Source of the DNA: Eutreptiella sp. 'Long Island Sound 2002'
Lineage: Eukaryota > Protista > Euglenida
DNA length: 64,000 nucleotides
Assembly (NCBI GenBank): GCA_964036045.1
Contig: OZ038379.1
Location: 22,568,001 to 22,632,000 of the forward strand
Reading direction: 5' to 3'
A program made the translations under genes and the position numbers. The notes below the pieces were generated by a model, which ran no database searches, was not told where the DNA came from, and was given only the letters and a program-made list of their open reading frames with translations. Positions 2,660 to 43,700 of this stretch are shown piece by piece. The first letter of the stretch is position 1. Every line of letters starts with the position of its first letter.

Positions 2660-3520
2660 GTGCGAGTCGCTACAGATGCTAGTGATTTGGAATTGGGTGC
2701 AATCGATTTAAGCAACCACGAGCGAACCGTGCATGCTTATACTGACCCTAAATTGCATATAAATGTCAAAGAGATAAGAGCATCCACGCTCGGGGTTCGA
2801 GCTTTTGCCCTTAAGAACTCGGTTGTTGAATGCTATGTTGACAACATAGTAACATATTTTTATCTCCTTACTCAGGGTGGCCGCAAGCGTCATCTCAACA
2901 AGGAGCTCCGCCCCTTCTTCTTTTGGGCGTGGGACCAGAACATCGAGGTGAGACCTCTTTGGGTGCCGTCGGATCAGAATCCAGCGGACCGAATTTCGAG
3001 GCGCGGGTTCGACGCGAAGGAAGCTCGCTTGTCCCGCGTAGTGTTTCTAACCATTGTGCATCGCTTTCGCATCAAGCCAGTGGTAGACGTTTTTGCCTCT
3101 CACGGCAACTCCCAGTGCCATCTTTATGTCAGCCGGGATTTCGACCCGGACGCTTTGGCTTGCGACGCCCTCAAAACCAATCTTTTAGGGATGCCCCTTC
3201 TTTATGCTTGCCCCCCGTGGAACCTCATAGGTCCCTTTCTGAACCATCTTTCTCAATTCCCCAAGACCCGGTGTCTATTGGTGTGCCCCATGTGGACGGG
3301 GTGCCCTTGGTGGCCCCAACTACTTCGGCTCTCAGATCTGTCGTACCGTCCTCGGGTCGTAAAGCCCCATCGGGGCCTTTTTCAAGACTTTTGGAACAAG
3401 CCGCTTCCGGCTCCAAGAGTATCCCTCCTTTGCGTGATGTTATCTGTTCCGTCGTTGGCAAAAAGAATTATTCTGAGGCATCAATCCAAGCGATTTTGGA
3501 AAAACTTGCGCCCTCTTTGA
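2660..3520 (+). CDS. DIRS-type RNase H followed by DNA N6-adenine methyltransferase-like domain (C-terminal part of pol ORF)
   Basis: RNase H motifs TDAS, HINVKE, YVDN, GG, WVPSDQNPADRISR. MT-like motifs DVFASHGN, DAL, YACPPW, LLVCPMW..CPWWPQL. In-frame TAG at 2630-2632 upstream indicates truncation or decay. Confidence 0.85.
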   Translation: MRVATDASDLELGAIDLSNHERTVHAYTDPKLHINVKEIRASTLGVRAFALKNSVVECYVDNIVTYFYLLTQGGRKRHLNKELRPFFFWAWDQNIEVRPLWVPSDQNPADRISRRGFDAKEARLSRVVFLTIVHRFRIKPVVDVFASHGNSQCHLYVSRDFDPDALACDALKTNLLGMPLLYACPPWNLIGPFLNHLSQFPKTRCLLVCPMWTGCPWWPQLLRLSDLSYRPRVVKPHRGLFQDFWNKPLPAPRVSLLCVMLSVPSLAKRIILRHQSKRFWKNLRPL

Positions 3521-4716
3521 AGAGATATGATTCTGCTTTTCGTTTGTTTTGCTCTCTAGGCATGGAGATGGGATATTCATTCCCCGATGTCACGTTACCC
3601 CAAGTGGTCAACGTACTTTCGACCATGCATCAAGTGTCCCCTTCTCAGGCCTCCTCAGCTTATTCTGCTTTGCTCAAGTTTCCTGATCTTACATCGTTGT
3701 CTTTTGACCCGGCCGTTCGTGCGCTACGACGGCGATGGACGACTAGTGTACCTAAGTACGTTGTCTTTTGGAAAGGCGAGCAATTGGTCGCATTTTTGGC
3801 GGCGCAAAAGCTTGACCGTTCCTCGAAGTTTCACGTCCGTGCACGTTTGATCATTGTTTTTCGTTTGTTTCAATTGTATCGCTCCTTTGATTTGTCCAAT
3901 ATGCTTAGAGTGCTAGCGACTTATGATGGCAAGTGGTTTGTGCCCACCCGCCGAAAGGGGTGGGCAAATTTGCGGTGGGATCGAGTTATGTCTATCCCTT
4001 CTTTGCCCGATTTTTGTCCGCTAACCTTACTGAGATCCTATTTGCGTTTAACACCGGAGGGTGCTTCCCCGGAGGGCGTTGAGCCCAAGCGTGTGTTTTT
4101 GGCCGTTGTGCGGCCCTTTGGCGCTTTGTCGTCCGATAGAATTGCTGCAGTAACCAAGGAGTTGTTGGTGGCTGCAGGCATAGACATGGAGCTATTTGGC
4201 GCCCACACCACGAGGGCCGTGGGCCTCGCCCTACTTCGTGCGTTGGGCTTGTCAGCCGAACAGGCTGCTGAAATTGGCAGTTGGGCCAATTTGCAGGCTT
4301 TTTCCCTTGCCTATTCTCGGGTAGGGGCAGCCGATGTGTTGTCGGATGCCTTGCAGCGCGTTAGTTATGTGCACACTCGTCCAAGCACTTGTTGCGGAGC
4401 CGCCGACTCTCCTCTTACTCCCTCTAGTAAGCATGCAGAGGGAGGAGGGGGAGAGGAGGTGGCGGAGCAACAAGGGCTTGGACCCACCACACCCGACCCT
4501 GATGTTACTCCCGCGCTGCCCGTGCATCCGCCCAAGTCGCAGACCAGGTCCAAGGTTCTTACAATCAAAGGGTGGCGCTCGTCCCCTCGTTTTGTAAATC
4601 ACTTAGGCAAGAGGCGTGCGCCTTCGCCAGCATTGTTGGAGGAGCAACCACGGAAGGAGGCGCGCTCAACCTTCGGAAGAAAGTGTACTCAATTCCGGTT
4701 GGATGACTTACGGTGA
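3430..4716 (+). CDS. Tyrosine recombinase (DIRS YR ORF)
   Basis: Catalytic-type motifs RSFDL, CPLTLLRSYL, FGAHTTR (HxxR), GSW, AFSLAY. Lies within ORF 2923-4716; true start uncertain. Confidence 0.85.
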   Translation: MRDVICSVVGKKNYSEASIQAILEKLAPSLKRYDSAFRLFCSLGMEMGYSFPDVTLPQVVNVLSTMHQVSPSQASSAYSALLKFPDLTSLSFDPAVRALRRRWTTSVPKYVVFWKGEQLVAFLAAQKLDRSSKFHVRARLIIVFRLFQLYRSFDLSNMLRVLATYDGKWFVPTRRKGWANLRWDRVMSIPSLPDFCPLTLLRSYLRLTPEGASPEGVEPKRVFLAVVRPFGALSSDRIAAVTKELLVAAGIDMELFGAHTTRAVGLALLRALGLSAEQAAEIGSWANLQAFSLAYSRVGAADVLSDALQRVSYVHTRPSTCCGAADSPLTPSSKHAEGGGGEEVAEQQGLGPTTPDPDVTPALPVHPPKSQTRSKVLTIKGWRSSPRFVNHLGKRRAPSPALLEEQPRKEARSTFGRKCTQFRLDDLR

Positions 4717-4911
4717 TTTGTTCCTTGGCTACCTGAACTGCCGTCTCCAAAAAAGTTAACGAGCCGGCAATAAGAAGCTGTTGTCCAACCCCTTGTTGCT
4801 CCGCCACCTCCTCTCCCCCTCCTCCCTCTGCATGCTTAGTAGAGGGAGTAAGAGCACCGATTCGGGCGAAGCGAGAATGAGAGAGAATATGGAAGAAGAT
4901 CCCAAAGGGTG

Positions 4912-5098
4912 AGCCACACCTGCCGGTAGTGCAATAGCAGGGCAACTCGTGTCATGGGACTCAGCAAGCTGAGGGGAAGCCCATGACCCCAACAAGAAAT
5001 TAGTTTAATTTCTTATCCAGCAGTGCTGGATATATCAGAAATTAAAGTGATAAGAACAGATACTACACTTGATCTTAGCCAAAAGGCCGAGAAGGTAT
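4912..5098 (-). ncRNA. RNU2: U2 spliceosomal snRNA
   Basis: Minus strand reads ATACCTTCTCGGCCTTTTGGCTAAGATCAAGTGTAGTATCTGTTCTTATCA (U2 5' domain with GTAGTA branch-site recognition sequence), then an Sm-like site AATTTCTTG, stem III, and stem-loop IV with loop ATTGCACTACC. 3' end approximate. Confidence 0.97.
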
Positions 5099-5264
5099 GC
5101 GACAGCGTGCTGATCAAGTAATCAGGCTATCCACGTACAGTTTATAATGTGGTCTTGACTAAGCTACGTTTCCTACAAACACACATGGCACCTTACACGT
5201 GAAGCCTCTGCCGCTTGACACGCCAAGAAACTGCCTAGCTACCCCCCCTGCCGTGGCCCATAAG

Positions 5265-5367
5265 AAAAGGTGATACTTTCTCGATTAATGCGTGTCATCC
5301 TTGCGCAGAGACCATGCTAATCTTCTGTGTATCGTTCCAATTTTAGCGGATGTCCCCGAAGGGCTCC
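5265..5367 (-). ncRNA. RNU6: U6 spliceosomal snRNA (variant ACACAGA box)
   Basis: Minus strand reads GGAGCCCTTCGGGGACATCCGCTAAAATTGGAACGATACACAGAAGATTAGCATGGTCTCTGCGCAAGGATGACACGCATTAATCGAGAAAGTATCACCTTTT: 5' stem-loop, AGC triad, ISL and TTTT terminator. Confidence 0.97.
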
Positions 5368-5617
5368 GGTACAACAGCGGATTTTCTTTCAACTGGCCAT
5401 CTGTGACCTGCCGTTCTTGGCCACTTGGTTCCGGAAACCGGTTTCTAACCAATTATAAATTTGACTCCGCAAAAAAAAAATTGCTGAACAGTGTTGTGCT
5501 CATGAACAGACGGTAGAAAGAAAACAGTAGGCAGTAGAAGTAGACAGCAGACCTGCCTTACCCTGCGTTACCCTAGCAGACCTGCCTTACCTGGCGTTAC
5601 CCTAACTTTAACAATTA

Positions 5618-6490
5618 ACTGGCAATCGGCCCGCGCAAATGCGCGGGTTGCCAACAAAATTTATAGAGTGATAGGGCCGCATCCTTACAGTTGGGTATCC
5701 AGCCTACGCGGTGATCCTATCAGGGTTCGCACTGGTCCCATGGGTAGGGATGGCAGAGGCTCCGCATTGATCTTGTTGTCGGCCCATCACTCACGGTATG
5801 GGACGTTGAAGTTGGAAGGCATGTACGTTGTGAGCTGTGGAAGATCTCAGTCCAATATTTCCGGCCAAACAATGTTTTCAATGACTCCATAGTTGTTTGC
5901 GTCAACCTGCAAGTCCGCTGCTGTCCATACTTTGATACCGCTTAAATTTCCGCAGCGCGATAGAGCAACATAAACTTGACCATGTGAAAATGGTCGGGTT
6001 GCCAATAAGAGACCCACTTTGGGAAACTTCTAACGTTGGCTTTTGTTAATGGTCATACAGAAGGCTAACTTTACAGGAAATTGGCGACGAATAAACTTGA
6101 TAGGGATATCATCATCATCAGATACGGTGAGATTAATTCGGGGTATGCAAACGGAGTTTCCTTTGTGTGTTCCTGTTAGCACCGTTGCTTGGATTGTGTA
6201 GCGAAGACACGAAGTAACACTCAATCGGGTTCATAAGGCCAGTTCAAGTTGCGTATGAGTATTATTGGTGCTCCAGCCTTAAGATTGAGGCGATGTTGTG
6301 GCATTCCTGATGGGATTAATGTGTTGAAGAACTCGTTTGGGTAAATGTTGGATTGGGCTTCAGAATCTTCACCAAAATAATCAGCTGACTCATAAACATG
6401 TAAATCACCGGGCAATGATTCCCGAATCACACATTAATTGTGTCCGGCGTTTCATTTTTGATGTCAAGATACAACGGTCATGAGATGCTT
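5618..6490 (-). mobile_element. Helitron 3' fragment with decayed PIF1-type helicase
   Basis: Minus-strand motifs YPNEFFNTLIPSGMPQHRLNLKAGAPIILIRNLN, IPRINL, RRQFPVKLAFCMTINKSQ and FSHGQVYVALSR, broken by frameshift and stop. Subterminal hairpin CCCGCGCATTTGCGCGGG (5630-5647) is followed by a CCAGT end at ~5618. Confidence 0.88.
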
Positions 6491-6589
6491 GCGCATCAAC
6501 CATACTCAGACAATTATCGCCACTTTGTACCATGTGGGTAGCTAAAGGGAGTGGATTGAGGCTGGGGGCCATGCACCAATGTTCAATGC

Positions 6590-8764
6590 CGGCATGCCGG
6601 CAGGAAGTTCGCGGTGCACTCGGGTACATAGACGAAACTCCAAGAGAGTTGCAGAAATTGACGGAGACATGTGCCGTGCTGTGCAGCGCCGGCGCTGGCG
6701 CTTCCGATAACATCGACAAATAGCGCTAACAGGTGGTTCTGGGAGTAGTTACAAGCGGTTAGCGCCCGCTCGGCCAACTGAACAGCCAGAATCGGCGAAG
6801 ATGCAACCGTACTGCACACCGATCGATGCGCCTCAAAAATGCGCATACATCTGTGTAATTAGATCGCAATGACATTGATCTGAATAACAAAAAGGAAACC
6901 GGATAGACACGAATGTGTTTTTCACAATGAACTTCTATGCCTGTTTTCAACGCCATAGAAGAAGCGCAAGCCTTGCAGTCGATGGATGGCTGGTGAATCT
7001 GATTCGGAATCCGTCATATCTTCCCTAGAAAGCAGGAGGTGCAGGAAATTCATTGGATTGTGTTTCGCTGGTGGTGTTGAAAAACACCGTTTGCAGCTAC
7101 TCGGGAGAACTTCTCATTTCTTCGCGGCCGCCTTTCTTGCACGCTCGCGTATCTTCTTCCTTTCCTTCTCCATTCGCTTGCGTGCTTGCCGCTCTTGATG
7201 CTTCTTCATCCGCGCTTGTTGCTGCAGCAGCGCACATGCTGCGTCTCGGACGAAGCTTCGCACGGCTATGGCCAGGTTGGCCCTCGCATCCTCCAAGTCC
7301 GTGGTGAAGTTTCCCGGAGGACGTGTTGGGAACCGCCGTTCTTGTTCCTGAAAGAGAGGACAAAAAGCAATATGAGGTAGAACCTCTTTTTTTTTTTTTT
7401 TGGTCAAAGGTTAACGTACCTTACGTTGAAGCTTCATGAGCTTGCGAACCCTCTGAACTGCGTTTGGGCCTCGGGGTCCCCGAGGTTCAGCCTTTGTGAG
7501 GCGTCGCTCGGGAGGAGGTGCTCGGCGTTGGGCTTCGGCTGCACGAAGGGCTTCGCGGTATGCACGAGCCCTTTCCAATACTTCGCGGTCGAAGGTATCG
7601 GGGTTGCGGGGAAGTGCCGCCCAGGCCCGAAGAGGTGCCCAGGGGTCCCCCTCTAAAGGGTTCGGTGGGGCCGCAGGGGAGACAGCCGGAGGAGCTGTGG
7701 CATGTGATGCATGTGATGCCTGGGTTGGGTTGCGCACAGACTGCAGCAAATTGCGCAAGTTCCCGTTGGTATCCTTGGGAGGCCTCAAGCTCTCCTCCAC
7801 AGAAGGCACCGGTGAGGGCGCCCGCTATGGCGAAGGGCTATCAGCCACCACAAGAACATCCGCCGGGGATGCTGCCGGGGATGGCAACCTTGCGGGCGAT
7901 GCCGGGGATGGCGACTGTGGTGCCGGGGACGGCGACCGACGGTAGTCCGTGGGGTGCCACATACACTCCACTTCACTGTAGGGGCTACAGTCGAAGGGAT
8001 TGAAGCTGCTTGCAGACATGAGTACCTGCGAAGAGCAATGAGTGAACTGGACAGGAGGGTATTGCACCAGTGATGCAATGCCGGCAGGAAGTTCGCTCTA
8101 AGCCGCTCGGGGACATAGAGGAAACCTCGGGGGAAGTGCAAAAATTGACTGACACATGTGCCGTGCTGTGCAGCGCCGGCGCTGGCGCTTCCGATAACAT
8201 CGACGGATAGCGCTAACAGGTGGTTCTGGGAGTAGTTACAGGCGGTTAGCGCCCGCTCGGCCAACTGAACAGCTACAATGGGCGAAGATGCAACTGTACT
8301 GCACACCGATCGATGCGCCTCAAAAATGCGCATACATCTGTGTAATTGGAAAAAAAAATGCCGCCTTGTACCATAAATTCTTTTCTGCGATGCGCACACG
8401 CGCGCCGCCGCCAGGCCCGCGCCTGGACACGACGACGACCAGTCTGAAAATAATAGAAAGATGTGCCGTGCTGTGCAACGCCGGCGCTGGTGCTTCCGAT
8501 AACATCGACGGATAGAGCTAACAGGTGGTTCTGGGAGTAGTTACAAGCGGTTAGCGCCCGCTCGGCCAACTGAACAGCCAGAATCGGCGAAGATGCAACC
8601 GTACTGCACACCGATCGATGCGCCTCAAAAATGCGCATACATCTGTGTAATTGGAAAAAAAAATGCCGCCTTGTAGCATAAATTCTTTTCTGCGATGCGC
8701 ACACGCGCGCCGCCGCCAGGCCCGCGCCTGGACACAACGACGACCAGTTTGAAAATAATAGAAA
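6590..8764. repeat. Three direct copies of a ~200-270-bp repeat (6590-6860, 8080-8347, 8461-8651); the last two belong to a ~304-bp tandem duplication
   Basis: Shared core CCGTGCTGTGCAGCGCCGGCGCTGG...GGTGGTTCTGGGAGTAGTTAC...GATCGATGCGCCTCAAAAATGCGCATACATCTGTGTAATT. Confidence 0.9.
7114..8067 (-). pseudogene. Spliced ORF of unknown function (Ser/Pro-rich N-part, basic coiled-coil C-part) with an in-frame TAG at 7825-7827
   Basis: ORFs 7825-8067 and 7411-7809 share a frame. A phase-0 GT-AG intron (7348-7419; GTACGT donor, pyrimidine tract + CAG) joins ...KLQRK to EQERRFPT...AAAKK. Confidence 0.5.
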
Positions 8765-9575
8765 GAAGTTTGCGAAGTCTTGTTCTCGTAGGTATCGCCT
8801 CGTACCAGCACCTCTCTCGTACCATACCAGCGTCTCCCGTTGGTGGCCCCATGCACAGAAGAAAGAAGAAAGGCCCCGTGAGGGGCCGCAGAAATTAATC
8901 CGTCAGCCACCGAGTGGCCGTTGGATTGGGGTAATTGGGTAGTTTTCAACTAGCAATTTCCTCAGGCTTCTCTTAAGAGATCACAAGCTCTGAGTAATTC
9001 CCGAGCGCAAGAATACATGGAAATTCGCGAAGGCCAACTTTTGACAGATTGTTTGCGCGTAGCAGATGCTGGTCCGTCTGGCGGTTTCAGCGATTCCCAT
9101 CCCAAATGTGGTCGAAAGATTGATTCGCAGTTCGAGTGGGTACATTCAGGAGGTGAAATCGCGTGCGACGCGCCATTTTGAGGGCTTAAAATGGGACTTG
9201 GAACTTTTCGCCTTTAGACCTGCCGAGGCGATGGATGGATGCCTTTTGATGTGAAGATTTCGACACTGTGCCCTATATAGGCTGTAACGCGATGTCAATT
9301 TCGACGTGTATTTCGTCGGTTCTGGAGGTCGTTTTAGCTAATGCTGTTGAGTTCGAAGATAGGTGAGCAGCCGTTCGACGATAGGTGAGCAGTCGTTCGC
9401 CTTTCTGTGCATTGCACTGGGGCACATTCGCAGGCAATTTAGCGACGTAACACCATCTTTGTGTACAATTTATTTGTCGCCCTTTGGGAAAGCGACAAAT
9501 TACCTCAAGGCCGAATTCACAATTGAGTTCAATTGAAGAATTTATACTTCTACCGTTGCCTAACACGCCGTCATC

Positions 9576-34700: not shown

Positions 34701-37700
34701 GCTGTGGCATTACATTCACGTGGACAATGATGACTCTGGCACCGTGACCGAGCACCAGTGGCAAGAGGTATGTCTGTGAACATGTTCACAAGTCTCATGC
34801 CATGTCATTTGGTCTCGACAAACGATGTGCAGGGGAGCAGGGACATGGGCCTGGTGAAAGGGAGACCAACATCCTAGAAGTGCGCAAGGCCTGTCAGAAG
34901 GCCGCGTCGTGCTCTGCGGATATGTATCGTGCAGGGTCCCTGAGTTGGATGCCTGCATAAGCAGAGAACGTCCAGTGTTGAGGCACAGGAGTTGAAAGTT
35001 TTAGATGCAATCTGCTCCCTGCTTTTTTGCCGTAGCAATAGTTTTTCGTTCTTTTCGGTGCTAAGTTTCTTTGTAAATGGCAAAAGGTGGTGCAAAAGGG
35101 ACCCAATTTGAAAAAGGAGTGCATGCGAAGCAAAAATTGCAACAGGTAAAAGGCAAAAAGGTGCAAACCAGAGTAGTACTGTAATTTTGTGGTGACTATC
35201 CCTTCCATGTTCTGGGCCGATTTCATAACATGAATCTCCAACTCGGCTTTCCGTTGCGGATTCCCGGAGGGAACGTCTTAAACCGTCCGTTAGATACATC
35301 CGAATGCCGATTCACAAAACGATGAAAAAAAATCAGGTGTTGCAACAGCAGTATTCAATCCAAATTCAATGGTTCTTGATTCAATGTCCATGGTTGCACC
35401 CAGGGGCATTGCTTTGTCGTTTCTAATTCTAAAACTTCACAAAATTCCAGGAAATTCAAAAGGGGCTGCGTGTATACATTGGGGCCCACAAAAGATAGAA
35501 GAATGATCAAGGTCAGGTGTGTGGGAGGTACACTTCCTCCTTGTATATGATTGCGTTGCTCCTACGTAGTTCCCAACAATCGGTACACCGTCCTGACATA
35601 GTCCTGACACTACGTTTTTCCCAGACACAGAGTTCATCATGCCCAGGCAATGACCAGATGTATCTATGGCAACACAGGCACAGAGAGTGATCTCTCTTAG
35701 ACATACTAATATCCAGACGAGCAGTTTGGGCAGCCCATTTCTGACCGACGCAGGAGCAGGGGACAGCTTTCAGAAACCATGCCGGGACAGTGGGCCGGAG
35801 GGTGTCGTGCCTGTCCCAGTGGTTGTCAGTTCGTGTTACGGCACGGCGTAACTGTCAATCAGCGTTTGTACGCTCTGCATTGTGCCCTATTCATCAGGGA
35901 CTGGAGGCTGTGTTGCAGCTGGACATCCCCTGGAACGAGTACCAGGAGGACCTGGTCACATTGGACGACTCAGGGCGTGTGGATTATCGCCGCTTTTTGC
36001 ACCGCTTCCGCATTGGGGTCTGTCCCGTGAGGTAGTTTACGCATCTACGCGTGCGCCAGTGTGCAGCCTATGGGTCTGTGGTAGTGTGATTTGTGCGGAG
36101 TTATTGTTGTGCGGCTTTTTACCCAGAGTCCAGGCTCTGCACAGGTGGGGGTGGGGGGAAGGAATGTGTATGTTGTAATTCGTGTAATTTTTTTTTTTTC
36201 GCTGTAAATGCGCGTAACAAAAAAACCGTATAGTCGTGTAATTTTTTTTTTTTCGCTGTAAGTCGTGTAAGCCGGCTTACACGACTTACAGCAAAAAAAA
36301 AAAAATTACACCACCTGACGGTTTTTTTGTTACACGCATTTACAGCGAAAAAAAAAAAATTACACGACTTACAGCGAAAAAAAAAAAATTACACGACCTG
36401 ACGGTTTTTTTGTTACACGCATTTACAGCGAAAAAAAAAAAATTACACGACTTACAGCAAAAAAAAAAAAATTACACGACTTACAGCAAAAAAAAAAAAA
36501 TTACACCACCTGACGGTTTTTTGTTACACGCATTTACAGCAGAAAAAAAAAGCAAAAAAAAGCGTCAGGGGTTATGTAGCCACCTTGCCCACTTGTGGGC
36601 CACTTCTGATTCTGCCCCCCGCTCTGCAGCGGTGGGGCTCCCCGATACGGCAGGGGTGAGGTAGCCAATTTGCCCACTTGTGGGCCACTTCTGATTCTGC
36701 CCCCCGCTCTGCAGCGGTGGGGCTCCCCGATACGGCAGGGGTGAGGTAGCCAATTTGCCCACTTGTGGGCCACTTCTGATTCTGCCCCCCGCTCTGCAGC
36801 GGTGGGGCTCCCCGATACGGCAGGGGTGAGGTAGCCAATTTGCCCACTTGTGGGCCACTTCTGATTATGCCCCCCGCTCTGCAGCGGTGGGGCTCCCCGA
36901 TACGGCAGGGGTGAGGTAGCCAATTTGCCCACTTGTGGGCCACTTCTGATTCTGCCCCCCGCTCTGCAGCGGTGGGGCTCCCCGATACGGCAGGGGTGAG
37001 GTAGCCAATTTGCCCACTTGTGGGCCACTTCTGATTCTGCCCCCCGCTCTGCAGCGGTGGGGCTCCCCGATACGGCAGGGGTGAGGTAGCCAATTTGCCC
37101 ACTTGTGGGCCACTTCTGATTCTGCCCCCCGCTCTGCAGCGGTGGGGCTCCCCGATACGGCAGGGGTGAGGTAGCCAATTTGCCCACTTGTGGGCCACTT
37201 CTGATTCTGCCCCCCGCTCTGCAGCGGTGGGGCTCCCCGATACGGCAGGGGTGAGGTAGCCAATTTGCCCACTTGTGGGCCAATTCTGATTCTGCCCCCC
37301 GCTCTGCAGCGGTGGGGCTCCCCGATACGGCAGGGGTGAGGTAGCCAATTTGCCCACTTGTGGGCCACTTCTGATTCTGCCCCCCGCTCTGCAGCGGTGG
37401 GGCTCCCCGATACGGCAGGGGTGAGGTAGCCAATTTGCCCACTTGTGGGCCACTCCTGATTCTGCCCCCCGCTCTGCAGCGGTGGGGCTCCCCGATACGG
37501 CAGGGGTGAGGTAGCCAATTTGCCCACTTGTGGGCCACTTCTGATTATGCCCCCCGCTCTGCAGCGGTGGGGCTCCCCGATACGGCAGGGGTGAGGTAGC
37601 CAATTTGCCCACTTGTGGGCCACTTCTGATTCTGCCCCCCGCTCTGCAGCGGTGGGGCTCCCCGATACGGCAGGGGTGAGGTAGCCAATTTGCCCACTTG

Positions 37701-40700
37701 TGGGCCACTTCTGATTCTGCCCCCCGCTCTGCAGCGGTGGGGCTCCCCGATACGGCAGGGGTGAGGTAGCCAATTTGCCCACTTGTGGGCCACTTCTGAT
37801 TCTGCCCCCCGCTCTGCAGCGGTGGGGCTCCCCGATACGGCAGGGGTGAGGTAGCCAATTTGCCCACTTGTGGGCCACTTCTGATTCTGCCCCCCGCTCT
37901 GCAGCGGTGGGGCTCCCCGATACGGCAGGGGTGAGGTAGCCAATTTGCCCACTTGTGGGCCAATTCTGATTCTGCCCCCCGCTCTGCAGCGGTGGGGCTC
38001 CCCGATACGGCAGGGGTGAGGTAGCCAATTTGCCCACTTGTGGGCCACTTCTGATTCTGCCCCCCGCTCTGCAGCGGTGGGGCTCCCCGATACGGCAGGG
38101 GTGAGGTAGCCAATTTGCCCACTTGTGGGCCACTTCTGATTCTGCCCCCCGCTCTGCAGCGGTGGGGCTCCCCGATACGGCAGGGGTGAGGTAGCCAATT
38201 TGCCCACTTGTGGGCCAATTCTGATTCTGCCCCCCGCTCTGCAGCGGTGGGGCTCCCCGATACGGCAGGGGTGAGGTAGCCAATTTGCCCACTTGTGGGC
38301 CAATTCTGATTCTGCCCCCCGCTCTGCAGCGGTGGGGCTCCCCGATACGGCAGGGGTGAGGTAGCCAATTTGCCCACTTGTGGGCCACTTCTGATTCTAC
38401 CCCCCGCTCTGCAGCGGTGGGGCTCCCCGATACGGCAGGGGTGAGGTAGCCAATTTGCCCACTTGTGGGCCACTTCTGATTCTGCCCCCCGCTCTGCAGC
38501 GGTGGGGCTCCCCGATACGGCAGGGGTGAGGTAGCCAATTTGCCCACTTGTGGGCCACTTTTGATTCTGCCCCCCGCTCTGCAGCGGTGGGGCTCCCCGA
38601 TACGGCAGGGGTGAGGTAGCCAATTTGCCCACTTGTGGGCCACTTCTGATTCTGCCCCCCGCTCTGCAGCGGTGGGGCTCCCCGATACGGCAGGGGTGAG
38701 GTAGCCAATTTGCCCACTTGTGGGCCAATTCTGATTCTGCCCCCCGCTCTGCAGCGGTGGGGCTCCCCGATACGGCAGGGGTGAGGTAGCCAATTTGCCC
38801 ACTTGTGGGCCACTTCTGATTCTGCCCCCCGCTCTGCAGCGGTGGGGCTCCCCGATACGGCAGGGGTGAGGTAGCCAATTTGCCCACTTGTGGGCCACTT
38901 CTGATTCTGCCCGAGGAGTTGGACGTCCTTTCTAATCCTCTATTGGCTTCTCCCCCAGGTAAGGAGGTGAAGAAAAAAGAGGTCCAGTCATCTGATTCAG
39001 AGGTGGACCTCTTTGCGCCTCCCCCTGGCGCCCCTGTGCCAAAGAAGAAGGCGAAGGGAAAGAAGGTCTTGCCCAAGGCACCCCCTATCGACCCTCCCAA
39101 TCCCCAAAGGCGTACTCGGAGCACCATTCCGAGCGAAACAACCCCTTTGGGGGTGGGACATTGGTTGACCGACAAGGATATCCTGTGTTGGTTGAACCAA
39201 GAGGTCTGCCACAATGAAATCGATGAACCACGTGCGTGGACTCTTGCGGTTATATATATCAAGAGACTCTCCAAGTACATGCAGAGAGTTGAATCCGGCG
39301 AAAGAATGACCAACATGAGGTGGTGCCGCCGCCACATTTTTGTGGTTAATTCCAATGACAAGGAAGGGTTGCACTGGTTTGTGTGTGCCTTCGATTGTCG
39401 TGTCCGGTTGGAGCTTTTCACTATTTGGGTTTGGGAACCCCTAAGCTCCACTCATTTGATCCGTCCTTTCTTGTCGGCCTTGAAGAAGCTTTCGCGAACC
39501 ACCAAGCACCGCGCCTTGGGATTCCAAACGGACGGTTGGTCTTGTGGTTTTCAAAGCTTGAACATCGCAAAGCAGGTGGTGGAGCACCGGGGTACTTTTT
39601 CCAATGTGCCCCTTGTCCCAATGGGTGCCGGTTTTGTGGACTACGTGCTCAACATTGTTAACGCTGATCGTGCTGTGCGGGTCGCTCAAGCGCCCGGTGA
39701 TGATGTGGAGGGCGTGATCGAGCTTGCTGGCCCTCCTGAGTCCCCCCCCAGCACCCAAGTTGAAGGTGCACTTTCGGCTAAGGAGGACAGTGTTCAGGCC
39801 ACCCCCACCCCACTCGAAGGCAAGGAGGCCTCCGCCGAGCAGAGCGTGGAAAGCCCGGAGGCCAGGCCGCAACCTTCCGTGGACACTCCCACCGAGGAGG
39901 AGGACACCCGTCCCAAGGTCCTCATCCGTGGAGAGTGGCGCAAGGTGCCGGATGGCTACCCAGCAGATGCATCTGGCCAGCTGGAGCGTGACCAGCTTTT
40001 CATTGATGGCCTGTGCAAGCAGATAGTTCCAGAGTTGCGCGCCGCTTGTCAACTTAACGCCAATCCTGGTGCAAAGCCCAAGTCCGGTGACACAAAAACG
40101 GACTTGATCTACAAGCGTGCATTCTGCAACTACTTGTAGCGGGTGCATGTTTTGTGGGTTGTATTTTCCTCCGCCGTTTGGTGTACCAATGGTGGAGCGT
40201 ATAAGATTGCTATAATATTGGCCCCATGCCAGTGCCTTGGTGGCCTATAATGGTGGCAGTAGCGTTGGCCATGGCCCTGTCGGGACTCTTTTTCTTGAGC
40301 CTGATTTTGTTCCCAGTGCAGGCACACTGGATGTTGGCCATGGCCCTGTCAGGAATCTTCTCTTGGGCCTGATTTTGAGTCTAGTGCCAATGACAACATG
40401 TGAAACTATGTTATATTGGCCGAGTCCCAACTAATTGGTGGCCACGCGGAGTACTATGTGCTTTGTGGACTCGGCGTCCCATCGTTAAGGTCGCTATGGG
40501 GTGCCGTACGGAACCGGCAGCTGTACATATTGCGCATGTATTGCAAAGGTTGGATTTCTTTCAATTTTTCAATTTTTTTTATAATTTACACGACTTACAG
40601 CAAAAAAAAAAAAATTACACGACTTACAGCAAAAAAAAAAAATTCAATTTTTTTTTATAATTCACACGACTTACAGCAAAAAAAAAAAAATTACACGCAT

Positions 40701-43700
40701 TTACAGCAAAAAAAAAAAAATTACACGACTATACGGTTTTTTTGTACACGACTTACATTTTTCACGGAAGGAATGAGACGAAGGAGGGGGGCGGTGCTGC
40801 ATTTGTGCAGGGGTGTCCGAGGGCTGAACAGCAGTCCGCGTTTCCAGTGTCTACCTCACTGAATACCAGCACACCCTGGTCAATGTTGCCACGTGGCCCA
40901 CTTGCTGCACCAACTTTGAGCCGTTTGAGGTGCCGGATGTATCGGTAGTGTGAGGGCACGGGTCCGGGGGAAAGGGACGTCAGGGAGAGTGTGAGGGGAA
41001 TTGTCAATTACGACCAACTTAAGCAGAAGACCGCAGATCAACAACTGTGCCCCAGCTGGGGGCTTGCCTCCCATCAAAATAAGAGCAAATGAATGACTGA
41101 CGAACTGAAGGGCTGACGGGCTGACGGACAGACCATGGTTAATGGGTCTTTTTTTGGCTGGGGTCCATGTGGGGTTAAGGGGGTTCGGGAATCATTACTC
41201 AGTAGTGGTTGGTCAGTAATGATTCAGGGTTTCAGAATGAGAGGTTTCATTGAGACTTTTGGGTGTCAATTTCTGTGTCTCCCTGCCACCCGCCGCCCCC
41301 CCCTTTTTTCCCTTCCGTCTACTCCCGAGATGCAGAATTGTCCGCTTTTGATGCCTAAAACCTGGCATTGTGAGCACAACACTAAATGTACCCCTGCCAA
41401 TGCTTGTCGAAGAAAGCTGCTGCACAATACGAACCTCGAGCACAAGCTGCAACAATTCTGCCGAAGTTGTTGGCCTTGCGGTTTTTCCACTTATTGCTGG
41501 CATTTACTGTGCTGCTGCCATCACTGCAGCTGTGTACCCAAAGACCCCTTTGAAGCCAGCTCTAGTTGTAGTTCTCGTTTTGGGTCCAGAGAACAGGTCT
41601 TGAACTCCACATGTGTGAAACTGTTTGCATGGCAGCAATTGCCTGCTCATTCACAGTCACCCTGATCTATGGTTTCTCAGTCATCTTTCAATTGCCGAGC
41701 TGGGATGGTTGTCTTCAGCTGCTGGTGTCCTTCTTGCTCTGTGCTCAATACAATACCAATTGTTGAATGATTACTCCATGCCATTACTCAAGAACCTTTC
41801 CTCTGGCGGGTGGTTAGGGGGGGCGGTTCGCGGGACCCCCCCTCGCTTATTCGCAGCCCTGGGACAGACTGAATGCCAGACGGATTGTCTGACTGAATTG
41901 AATGAAGGCAGCAGTAGGGACTCACAACAGCATCAATAACATGTTTCTTTGCTGGCCTTTAACAGCATTGGCGTTTGGCGCAGCCACTACCCAACTGGTT
42001 GCGGACTGGGGGGATGAAGGGGATGGGCGCAGGGAATACAGGACATCATGGGAAAAGGGAGGGGGCGAAGGGGTGAAACAAGGGGATTTCCAACCGGGGG
42101 GCGAGGAAGGGAAAGGGGGACGGGAGGCCCCTCTTATGCTTCATGATGCGGTCAGGAGTTCGACCAAATGACGAAGAATTCAGACCCTGGGCTAATTGGG
42201 CGTTTCCAAAGATGAAACTTTGGGCCTGGTCTGGGCGTTTCGGATGCCCACAGACATTTGGTCGTTGTGTCCTGTTCAGTGACAATTGGCCTGCGGTGCG
42301 AGACACTCGCGTATATCAGACTTTGATGAGGGCGGATTTGTGTTATCAAGACACACTTAAGCTCTTTGAAGACGGCCTCACTGCAGAACATTTTTCTGCC
42401 ATGCTTCAGAAGTGCGGTTTGCAGGTTGCGTTGCCCTCCATCGTTCTGCACTCCGAATCAACGTCAGCGCACACAATGTCCATGTCCATGCTGTGCCACC
42501 CGCAGTGACTGGCTACTTGTTCCAAGGAGCTATCCTTCAGCAGGCACCGGGATTTGAACCTGCGGCTTCCCTGGCTGAAACAACGTCTGTCCCGCCAGGC
42601 ACAATGGTCTTTGGACCGGGTCTAGCTCAGTCAAGAGTTCAGTTTTGATTTCTGTCCCACACTGTCACCCGCAGTTGCCTTGTATGTTGCAGGTCCGAAT
42701 ACAATTTCCTGATAAAGACTCCAGTGGCCCGGAAAACTGCCGCATTTCACGGCCACCACCATTTTGTTTTTTTGCTCACGTCGCACGAGAGGAGGCCCCA
42801 ATGAATTATGATCATGGGTGTTGGGCAGGTCTCGTGATTTTTCCATACCGTTTTTCAGGTCGTTGTGCACATGTTTTCCTTTTGGACGTATTCGGTAAAC
42901 GGCCAAACCATTGCTCTAAACCGGAAACAATAGGCCTCTGCGGCAGCGAGGGCATTGCTACAGCATCTGTATTGCCCACCCTTCTAGGCGGGGGGGGGGC
43001 GGGGTCGGGGGCATCACATCTGAGCCCCGAAGTAGGGCTCCGGCAATCTCCATACCGCGACCTCATGGCAGCATTCAGCAGAAGTCATCGACACTGCGAT
43101 TCACAAACTGTGCCACCTCGCATCACTAAAGATCAATAATGGGGCAAATTCATTGTAAACCCCCCCCCTCGTTTAGACCGACCCCGCCCACTGCAACGAC
43201 CCACTCAAATACACTGACCCCTTCCAGTCACCGGGGCATGCAACACAATAAACCGACCCATTCCCAGACCCACGGCCACATCAAAGACGGATACAACAAC
43301 AATGTGGACAGGCAGCAGACTCTCATTGAAACTGTGCTGTGCGACAGTTGCTAACGCAGAAAGGAGGTGATGGGCATTTGCTTTGGTGCTGCCTTAGGTT
43401 TCGGCTTAGGCCTGGGCTGGGCAGCAGGTTTTGCTGCTGCAATCATATCCTTCTTGAACTGCTCCATGACAGCATCCACCCTAAAATAGAACGACCCCCC
43501 CCAATACACCGACCCCCGCAAAAATCTGCACCGTGCTGCCCGAAATTAACGACAGGGGCGTTCTAAACAGGGGGGGGGGGTTTAAGGGGGGGCTGCTGCA
43601 TCTGGTGGTTTGCAATACAGCTGGCCCTCCTCCCACCCATTCCTCAGCAGCACGGTGCCTGCACGCTGTGCGTGGTTCGACATTGCGAAGTTGAAACCGG

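Follow-up and report, generated by a model that had tools for sequence, protein, structure and literature searches.

A protease-encoding reading frame in a Eutreptiella Mutator-like element is most likely the truncated tail of a transposase

Ulp1 domains are found in Mutator elements from Arabidopsis, rice, maize, melon, and grapevine, and in entries from hydra and lancelet (PMC2836005, PMC13317346). Ginger1 transposases also carry C-terminal Ulp1 or OTU domains, sometimes accompanied by a PHD finger (PMC2836005). Open reading frames (ORFs) resembling those of Mutator-like elements (MULEs) have been noted in Diplonema (PMC10161547) and Merlin elements in Euglena gracilis (PMC8101967), and the E. 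gracilis genome paper reports repeats in bulk classes only, with about one-third unclassified (PMC11252322). The present analysis concerns a 64,000-nt stretch of the genome of the euglenid Eutreptiella sp. 'Long Island Sound 2002' (the window, to which positions refer unless another sequence is named) and an element located at 36166–40765. The initial annotation described this element as a recent, non-autonomous Mutator/Foldback-like DNA transposon delivering an intact Ulp1-type protease as cargo. Comparison with other copies in the genome makes it very likely that the element is instead a recent, internally deleted, non-autonomous copy of a young, high-copy, Mutator-like cut-and-paste transposon with Foldback-style termini, and that its protease ORF is the tail of the transposase. 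No description of this family was found in the literature searched.

Element boundaries and full-length relatives

The element is bounded by a perfect target-site duplication (TSD) of 9 bp: the sequence GGAAGGAAT was read directly at 36157–36165 and again at 40766–40774, immediately outside the two ends, and flank extraction agrees for both copies. The element starts with GTGTATG and finishes with TTTTTCAC, giving GTG...CAC ends. Its left composite terminus (36166–36565, plus strand) opens with this GTG and is constructed from 29–30-bp modules containing GTCGTGTAA, a T run, and CGCTGTAA. The left end also contains a palindrome without a spacer, whose two 100-nt arms (36174–36273 and 36274–36373) are 93% complementary and meet at 36273/36274. 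A 38-nt repeat holding the 29–30-bp module is present in six copies in the left end, and related 29–30-bp repeats occur in the right end. The right composite terminus (40566–40765, plus strand) closes with CAC, and its final 12 bases are common to 30 other copies. The left-end modules return there in inverted orientation within the last 200 bp, as illustrated by 36217–36261 and 40701–40745, which match at 98%. The element therefore combines the features of Foldback-type elements, namely composite termini that consist of tandem sub-repeats and can fold back, and a 9-bp TSD. The left terminus is followed by an 85-bp tandem array (36566–38912, plus strand), resolved by Tandem Repeats Finder (TRF) into 27.6 units with 99% matches. 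The TSD, the G...C ends, the inverted modular termini, the palindrome near 36273, and the array had all been named in the initial annotation, and each was confirmed on the window letters. The 85-bp unit is stop-free in every minus-strand frame and generates mechanical ORFs as long as 959 codons (36572–39451, minus strand); such frames have a chance of ~10% at this GC content and show no sign of coding.

The family was searched for in the 2.28-Gb assembly (2317 contigs). These searches scored the best-ranking candidates only, and the copy counts and the statements on junction uniqueness given below are lower bounds. The ORF returned at least 100 scored matches, all with E < 1e-180, from 9385 first-look candidates, and the left terminus gave at least 40 matches with 91–100% identity; for the segment 36166–36565, identity to at least 40 other left ends is 97–100%. 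The first 12 bases of the window element were found at ~40 other loci and its last 12 bases at ~30. In several copies, far longer open frames precede the "protease ORF". One of them, L065:944–9789 (minus strand), is a complete 8846-bp element that has the family termini and is flanked by a 9-bp TSD (TGTGCTGGT). It contains a single uninterrupted ORF of 1365 codons beginning with ATG (L065:1539–5636, minus strand), and the last 408 of these codons are the window ORF. L067 is a second copy with the L065 layout (TSD ACTGCGTGC). A 16-kb copy spanning L061/L062 (TSD GGGTAACTC) is also of L065 type and differs mainly in its ~150 array units. Full-length members are ~8.8 kb long and their ORF is intronless. 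With the L065 element as the reference, the left terminus occupies reference positions 1–358, the array 358–2888, a 5' region of ~1.3 kb 2889–4153, the transposase–protease ORF 4154–8251, the 3' untranslated region (UTR) 8252–8677, and the right terminus 8678–8846.

Because the window element aligns only to reference positions 1–2888 and 7024/7025–8846, it is the product of an internal deletion of ~4.1 kb that extends from the array interior to codon 957 and removed the 5' region and codons 1–957. The remnant of the transposase–protease ORF (codons 958–1365 and the stop; 38913–40139, plus strand) is colinear at 97–99% with L065:1539–2765, and the 3' UTR segment that follows (40140–40565, plus strand) is 98–99.5% identical to those of L061, L065, and L067. 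The deletion junction (38912|38913) was present in the window only, among 40 scored of 416 candidate places. The window frame is open from 38820 to 40139, with its stop codon at 40137–40139, and it contains no ATG before 39279. This first in-frame ATG corresponds to residue 52 of the protease domain, and most N-terminal helices of the fold lie before it. The stop-free frame reported in the initial annotation is thus real, although the ATG-less stretch preceding 39279 had been overlooked. The annotation was also right that the window copy contains no transposase. The idea that there is no autonomous partner was wrong for the family: a search for one returned L065, a full-length copy with a 1365-codon ORF, shared termini, and a 9-bp TSD. 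Delivery of an intact protease as cargo was likewise not upheld, as the ORF is the last 408 codons of a transposase–protease ORF that has lost its start and 957 codons.

Reproduction of the 9-bp match at other copies had been named beforehand as a check on the element. Among 15 copies with both ends, 11 have perfect 9-bp TSDs of unrelated sequence, three have 8-bp TSDs, and one has none; a 9-mer is expected to match by chance at fixed boundaries in ~4e-6 of cases per element. The boundaries are beyond chance because they are reproduced to the base in other copies. The proposed search for sister elements with shared termini was also productive and found both long and short copies. The ORF segments diverge from their consensus by only 0.25–2% per copy, which indicates that the family is young. 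The TSDs, the termini, and this low divergence support the earlier description of a recent, non-autonomous, Mutator/Foldback-like DNA transposon.

The 85-bp array belongs to the regular interior of family members and ranges from 0 to ~150 units in other copies. The largest array (~150 units, ~12.8 kb) is in L061:5058–10000 and L062:1–7854 (G000:C23, ~37.457–37.470 Mb), L054 has 0 units, and other copies have up to ~30. The satellite grows and shrinks within the transposon and is dispersed along with it. Two further loci, L033 (G000:C994) and L035 (G000:C6, ~1.61 Mb), have an identical double-deletion structure and near-identical flanks (AGGGGAACGTGC and AGGGGAATGTGC); they are probably a single locus that the assembly contains in duplicate, either because of a haplotig or through a duplicate contig left unplaced. 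In L064, two 416-aa ORFs looked like an inverted pair, but the proteins that they encode are unrelated, and the pair was rejected.

The transposase and protease regions of the full-length protein

The 1365-aa protein begins with a Cys/His-rich N-terminus, followed by a divergent, probable MULE/IS256-type DDE core and by SWIM-like and C1/PHD-like zinc fingers. After the fingers come a Lys/Pro-rich linker, a CE-clan protease domain, and a short tail. Pfam gave no useful match at E ≤ 1 for the whole protein. With a segment of L065, PF10551 (MULE) aligned to residues 436–536 over profile positions 2–99 of 99, with 13.3 bits and E 0.12, below the cut-off of 27.6. The Cys-rich finger between the transposase and the protease (L065 residues 880–938) is weakly DC1/C1-like and PHD-like (Pygopus), with E 0.08–0.7. 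A metagenome relative, P0074, shares 36% identity by BLAST over 898 positions (41% in the MAFFT alignment A4). Together with its cluster mates it matched MULE (E 0.0015), Transposase_mut (E 0.012), and the NCBIfam models IS256 (E 5.5e-4) and IS1249 (E 1.5e-4), all below cut-off; P0074, P0222, and P0225 reach ~19 bits to PF10551, with additional sub-cut-off matches to PF00872, IS256, and IS1249. In the ESM Atlas, the clusters nearest to residues 230–800 were MULE/SWIM (score 0.96, 192 shared features).

For Mutator-type transposases, the Eisen signature, D-x3-G-[LIVMF]-x6-...-C-x2-H, surrounds the second Asp (PMC2725143). Judged by eye in the alignment, P0074 keeps the D, G, and C-x2-H skeleton with exact spacing (G +4, C +21, and H +24 relative to D). 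In the window family, Ala replaces Gly and one residue is extra. Several intermediate positions of the signature differ. The family also has the TSDs of ~9 bp and the long composite termini (~200–400 bp) of Mutator elements, the latter on both the 8.8-kb coding copies and the short copies. Because the MULE/IS256-group matches coincide with 9-bp TSDs and long composite termini, assignment of the family to the Mutator superfamily appears strong and highly probable, but it is not formal. The 8-bp TSDs in three of the 15 elements and a Pfam MULE match below cut-off could instead point to another superfamily with 8–9-bp TSDs, such as Merlin or hAT, and Merlin families with 8-bp TSDs are present in E. 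gracilis (PMC8101967). However, every sub-threshold transposase match belongs to the Mutator/IS256 group (MULE, Transposase_mut, IS256, IS1249), the listed ESM neighbor clusters that have a Pfam family are MULE, SWIM, or ZSWIM, the modal TSD is 9 bp, and the termini are long and composite as in Tm1 (PMC3169594), making membership in such a superfamily exceedingly improbable. A genome scan with PF10551 was saturated by canonical MULE families and was uninformative on the window family. These other families reach ~70–76 bits to Pfam MULE and have open frames of ~1007–1039 codons (e.g., C6:29992165 and C8:24239576). On G000:C16 (6.45–6.82 Mb), ~15 PF10551 matches are clustered, ten of them with 338-codon open frames.

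The protease domain of the window copy was placed at 39126–39716 (plus strand) using an AlphaFold2 model, Foldseek, and VIA-align. Residue conservation identified candidate catalytic codons on the same strand for His (39372–39374), Glu (39435–39437), Gln (39525–39527), and Cys (39543–39545). The corresponding domain residues (His83, Glu104, Gln134, and Cys140) are conserved across relatives and lost only in evidently decayed fragments; the acid at 104 is Glu in the subfamilies of this genome and Asp in distant relatives. The His/acidic/Gln/Cys set noted in the initial annotation (starting at 39372, 39435, 39525, and 39543) is therefore present and kept in relatives. Pfam detected no PF02902 Peptidase_C48 domain at E ≤ 1 in the 419-aa ORF, the 1365-aa protein, or the distant relatives. 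One relative gave a weak match to Peptidase_C5 (E 0.0039), and the ESM Atlas offered a weak pointer to Peptidase_C48 (score 0.84). PDB sequence and profile searches with the ORF and with alignments A2, A3, and A4 returned only weak zinc-finger matches, and word-indexed homologue searches recovered nothing but family members and one environmental relative.

AlphaFold2 run on the single sequence gave a predicted local distance difference test (pLDDT) score of 41. A profile of divergent family members was then compared with 1.84 billion representatives, giving 255 matches, mostly decayed fragments from the organism group of this genome, plus six distant full-domain relatives. With these six in the alignment, the AlphaFold2 model reached a pLDDT of 89.3 and a predicted template modeling (pTM) score of 0.85. 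Foldseek found 82 matches to this model in the PDB at E ≤ 1e-3 (best 3.6e-7), and all those listed belong to the CE clan; the top matches were OtDUB, AvrA, XopD, NopD, SseL, SENP2, CidB, adenain, Ulp1, Den1, and pS273R of African swine fever virus (ASFV). All VIA-align matches were also in the CE clan. The predicted structure thus indicates a CE-clan (Ulp1/adenain-type) protease fold, an assignment made at the clan level only. In the initial annotation the domain had been called a C48-type protease; the Ulp1-like CE-clan fold stands on the AlphaFold2 and Foldseek results, but membership in the C48 family does not, given no Pfam match. A "SAP-like tail" had also been proposed, and Pfam gave no SAP (PF02037) match even at E ≤ 10, with the tail alone or with the linker.

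Between the subfamilies of this genome, the protease domain has a nonsynonymous substitution rate (dN) of 0.47 and a saturated synonymous rate (dS) of ~2.9, with their ratio, omega, at ~0.16. Linkage to a transposase is seen in relatives: in the environmental lineage, the protease comes directly after the transposase zinc ribbon in both P0077, where it is in frame, and L068. Because of this linkage and the low omega between subfamilies, the protease domain has long belonged to the autonomous protein and is under constraint there. In L068, the protease ORF (L068:4841–5488) overlaps the end of the transposase ORF (L068:1735–4884) in a shifted frame at a Lys/A-rich run, which could be an inherited frameshift, a homopolymer assembly artefact, or programmed frameshifting. 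A separate 215-aa form of the protease (P0227; P0075 cluster) is found on 14 contigs. A further protease-bearing subfamily, ~61% identical to P0061, gave 2442 first-look candidates (e.g., G000:C15:33273796 and C25:14660846), and its open frames, with the domain at their end, reach 1246 codons. The genome therefore contains several transposase–protease lineages side by side. The domain matters to the autonomous element and not as cargo. The presumed targets of the protease are ubiquitin-like modifiers such as SUMO, ubiquitin, or NEDD8, which it would strip from the transposase or, where transposition takes place, from factors of chromatin or repair; alternatively, it may serve in polyprotein processing.

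Fate of the protease tail and insertion context

In the cargo interpretation, a non-autonomous vehicle carries an intact, selected Ulp1-type protease that counters silencing, like the captured ULP genes of plant KI-MULEs. The stop-free frame of the window copy does keep its catalytic residues and CE-clan fold, most of the 30 best ORF matches are also stop-free, and omega is ~0.55 in the 28 best-scoring copies. However, the window ORF is the 3' end of a transposase ORF, with no ATG before the fold; in place of the separate gene of a Pack-MULE or KI-MULE, it is continuous and in frame with the transposase ORF of the full-length copies. Of the scored places, moreover, none but the window shows its junction. 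Retention of the tail was assessed in two samples of copies, one anchored on the ORF and so biased toward copies that keep it, and the other anchored on the left end and free of that bias. In the ORF-anchored sample, 26 of 30 copies have deletions with varied 3' endpoints (reference 5627–7062). All 17 left-end-anchored copies with a visible junction are deleted, with endpoints at reference 6268–8122, and eight of these deletions cut into or past the protease (~reference 7240–7830), removing it partly or wholly. In one of the copies, L045, which is 1.5 kb long and has a 9-bp TSD (CCCTTGAGT), nearly all of the ORF is gone and almost none of the protease is kept. L037 and L042 have one common junction at different loci, and deleted copies therefore do get mobilized.

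The substitution pattern leads in the same direction. Between recent copies in pairs not picked by protein score, omega is 0.80–0.95, which is near-neutral, and the dN/dS comparison proposed with the initial annotation thus did not bear out selection on the tail. The value of ~0.55 reflects the selection of those 28 copies by protein score. Recent copies, which lie 0.25–2% from the consensus, differ by only 3–24 substitutions per 1224 nt, and an open frame is expected from youth alone. Because the deletion endpoints are heterogeneous and omega is near-neutral, the window ORF is best regarded, from these comparisons, as a remnant that evolves neutrally, not as a cargo gene, and we consider the cargo interpretation very improbable.

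A second alternative is that the truncated tail is expressed and modulates transposition or the SUMO/ubiquitin pathways of the host, and the insertion context bears on it. A probable host coding exon with an EF-hand-like motif, followed by GTGAGG, was identified at 35871–36029 (plus strand) from paralogue matches. At the protein level, the five best of these matches in the genome show 43–49% identity with E 4.5e-5 to 1.75e-3, and Pfam gave no match to this exon-like ORF. The element lies 136 bp downstream on the same strand, and an intronic position is plausible from this arrangement. With such an exon upstream and a frame open from 38820, the tail could be expressed by read-through of the host transcript, by trans-splicing with use of the internal AUG at 39279, or from a non-AUG start. 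Truncated P-element transposase products act as repressors of transposition and provide a precedent. Against this, a start at the first AUG would drop domain residues 1–51, and with them most of the three N-terminal helices, and the tail has heterogeneous breakpoints and evolves near-neutrally. Expression of a functional tail is therefore considered very unlikely.

The preferred interpretation remains that of a deletion derivative mobilized by a full-length partner. The full-length protein would act in trans on the window copy by binding the repeated terminal modules, and would make 9-bp staggered cuts in the target; the window copy would have inserted recently, probably into an intron, leaving a start-less frame that is most likely silent and decaying. 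Several observations weigh against this interpretation. Inspection of the alignment with P0074 did not reveal the catalytic Glu of the DDE triad, and the matches to Pfam and NCBIfam transposase models all stay below the curated cut-offs. The search for an empty site yielded none, as each flank occurs only once in the assembly. Finally, if the omega of ~0.55 from the biased, protein-score-chosen set is taken at face value, it would suggest weak constraint on the tail.

Significance and comparison with known systems

The locus itself is an ordinary dead-on-arrival deletion derivative, probably intronic, and matters little. The family is of wider interest. Ulp1-bearing Mutator and Ginger transposases were already known, and the euglenid protease-fused lineage is new. 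It adds to scattered examples from plants, cnidarians, and lancelets and speaks for CE-clan proteases being recurrent functional partners of DDE transposases and not accidental captures; it further defines a divergent CE-clan family undetected by Pfam. It is also a clear example of a transposon that carries and disperses a satellite, whose 85-bp unit is repeated 0 to ~150 times. The family could still be moving, since the genome has one or more intact coding copies alongside derivatives that are very young. A stronger proposal, offered tentatively and in our view doubtful, is that the transposon is currently active and that its transposase needs its own C-terminal protease, from a previously unrecognized CE-clan family, for transposition or for escape from silencing. 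If that is true, the intact 1365-codon copy and the hundreds of near-identical derivatives would provide a tractable system for asking why proteases of ubiquitin-like modifiers recur in DNA transposases, and an endogenous tagging tool for the host euglenid could follow.

At the level of the protease fold, the order of His, acid, Gln, and Cys matches that of the CE-clan structures (Ulp1 1euv, SENP2, Den1, XopD, OtDUB, the CidB DUB, and adenain). The Gln-x5-Cys spacing of the window family domain is that of Ulp1. In contrast, sequence identity to these structures is 9–17%, and the searches gave no sequence-profile link to any PDB chain.

Ginger1 resembles the window family in combining a DDE transposase with a C-terminal protease of ubiquitin-like modifiers, and the Cys-rich finger of L065 recalls its PHD finger (PMC2836005). 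The DDE domain of Ginger1 is Gypsy-integrase-like, whereas the window family gives Mutator/IS256-type signals. Ginger target duplications are short, and the 9-bp TSDs of the window family would not fit.

Tm1 of root-knot nematodes, from the Phantom subclass, is alike in its composite inverted termini, which are built of short tandem modules and vary in length, in its TSDs of 8–10 bp (mostly 9 bp) without a target consensus, and in having few coding copies among many short derivatives (PMC3169594). The module sequences differ and Tm1 is without a protease domain, whereas the window family has a large satellite and a much longer transposase.

With the Ulp1-bearing MULEs (plant KI-MULE/Vandal KIU, the elements of melon, rice, and grapevine, and MuDR of hydra and lancelet), the window family shares 9-bp TSDs, long terminal inverted repeats, a probable MULE-type transposase, an internal CE-clan Ulp1-like domain, and non-autonomous deletion derivatives. 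It differs from them in coming from a euglenid and in its divergence, with no C48 match and 13–19 bits to MULE against a cut-off of 27.6. In KIU the protease is a separate captured gene, whereas in the window family it forms an in-frame, C-terminal fusion with the transposase, in an element that also has an internal 85-bp satellite of 0 to ~150 units.

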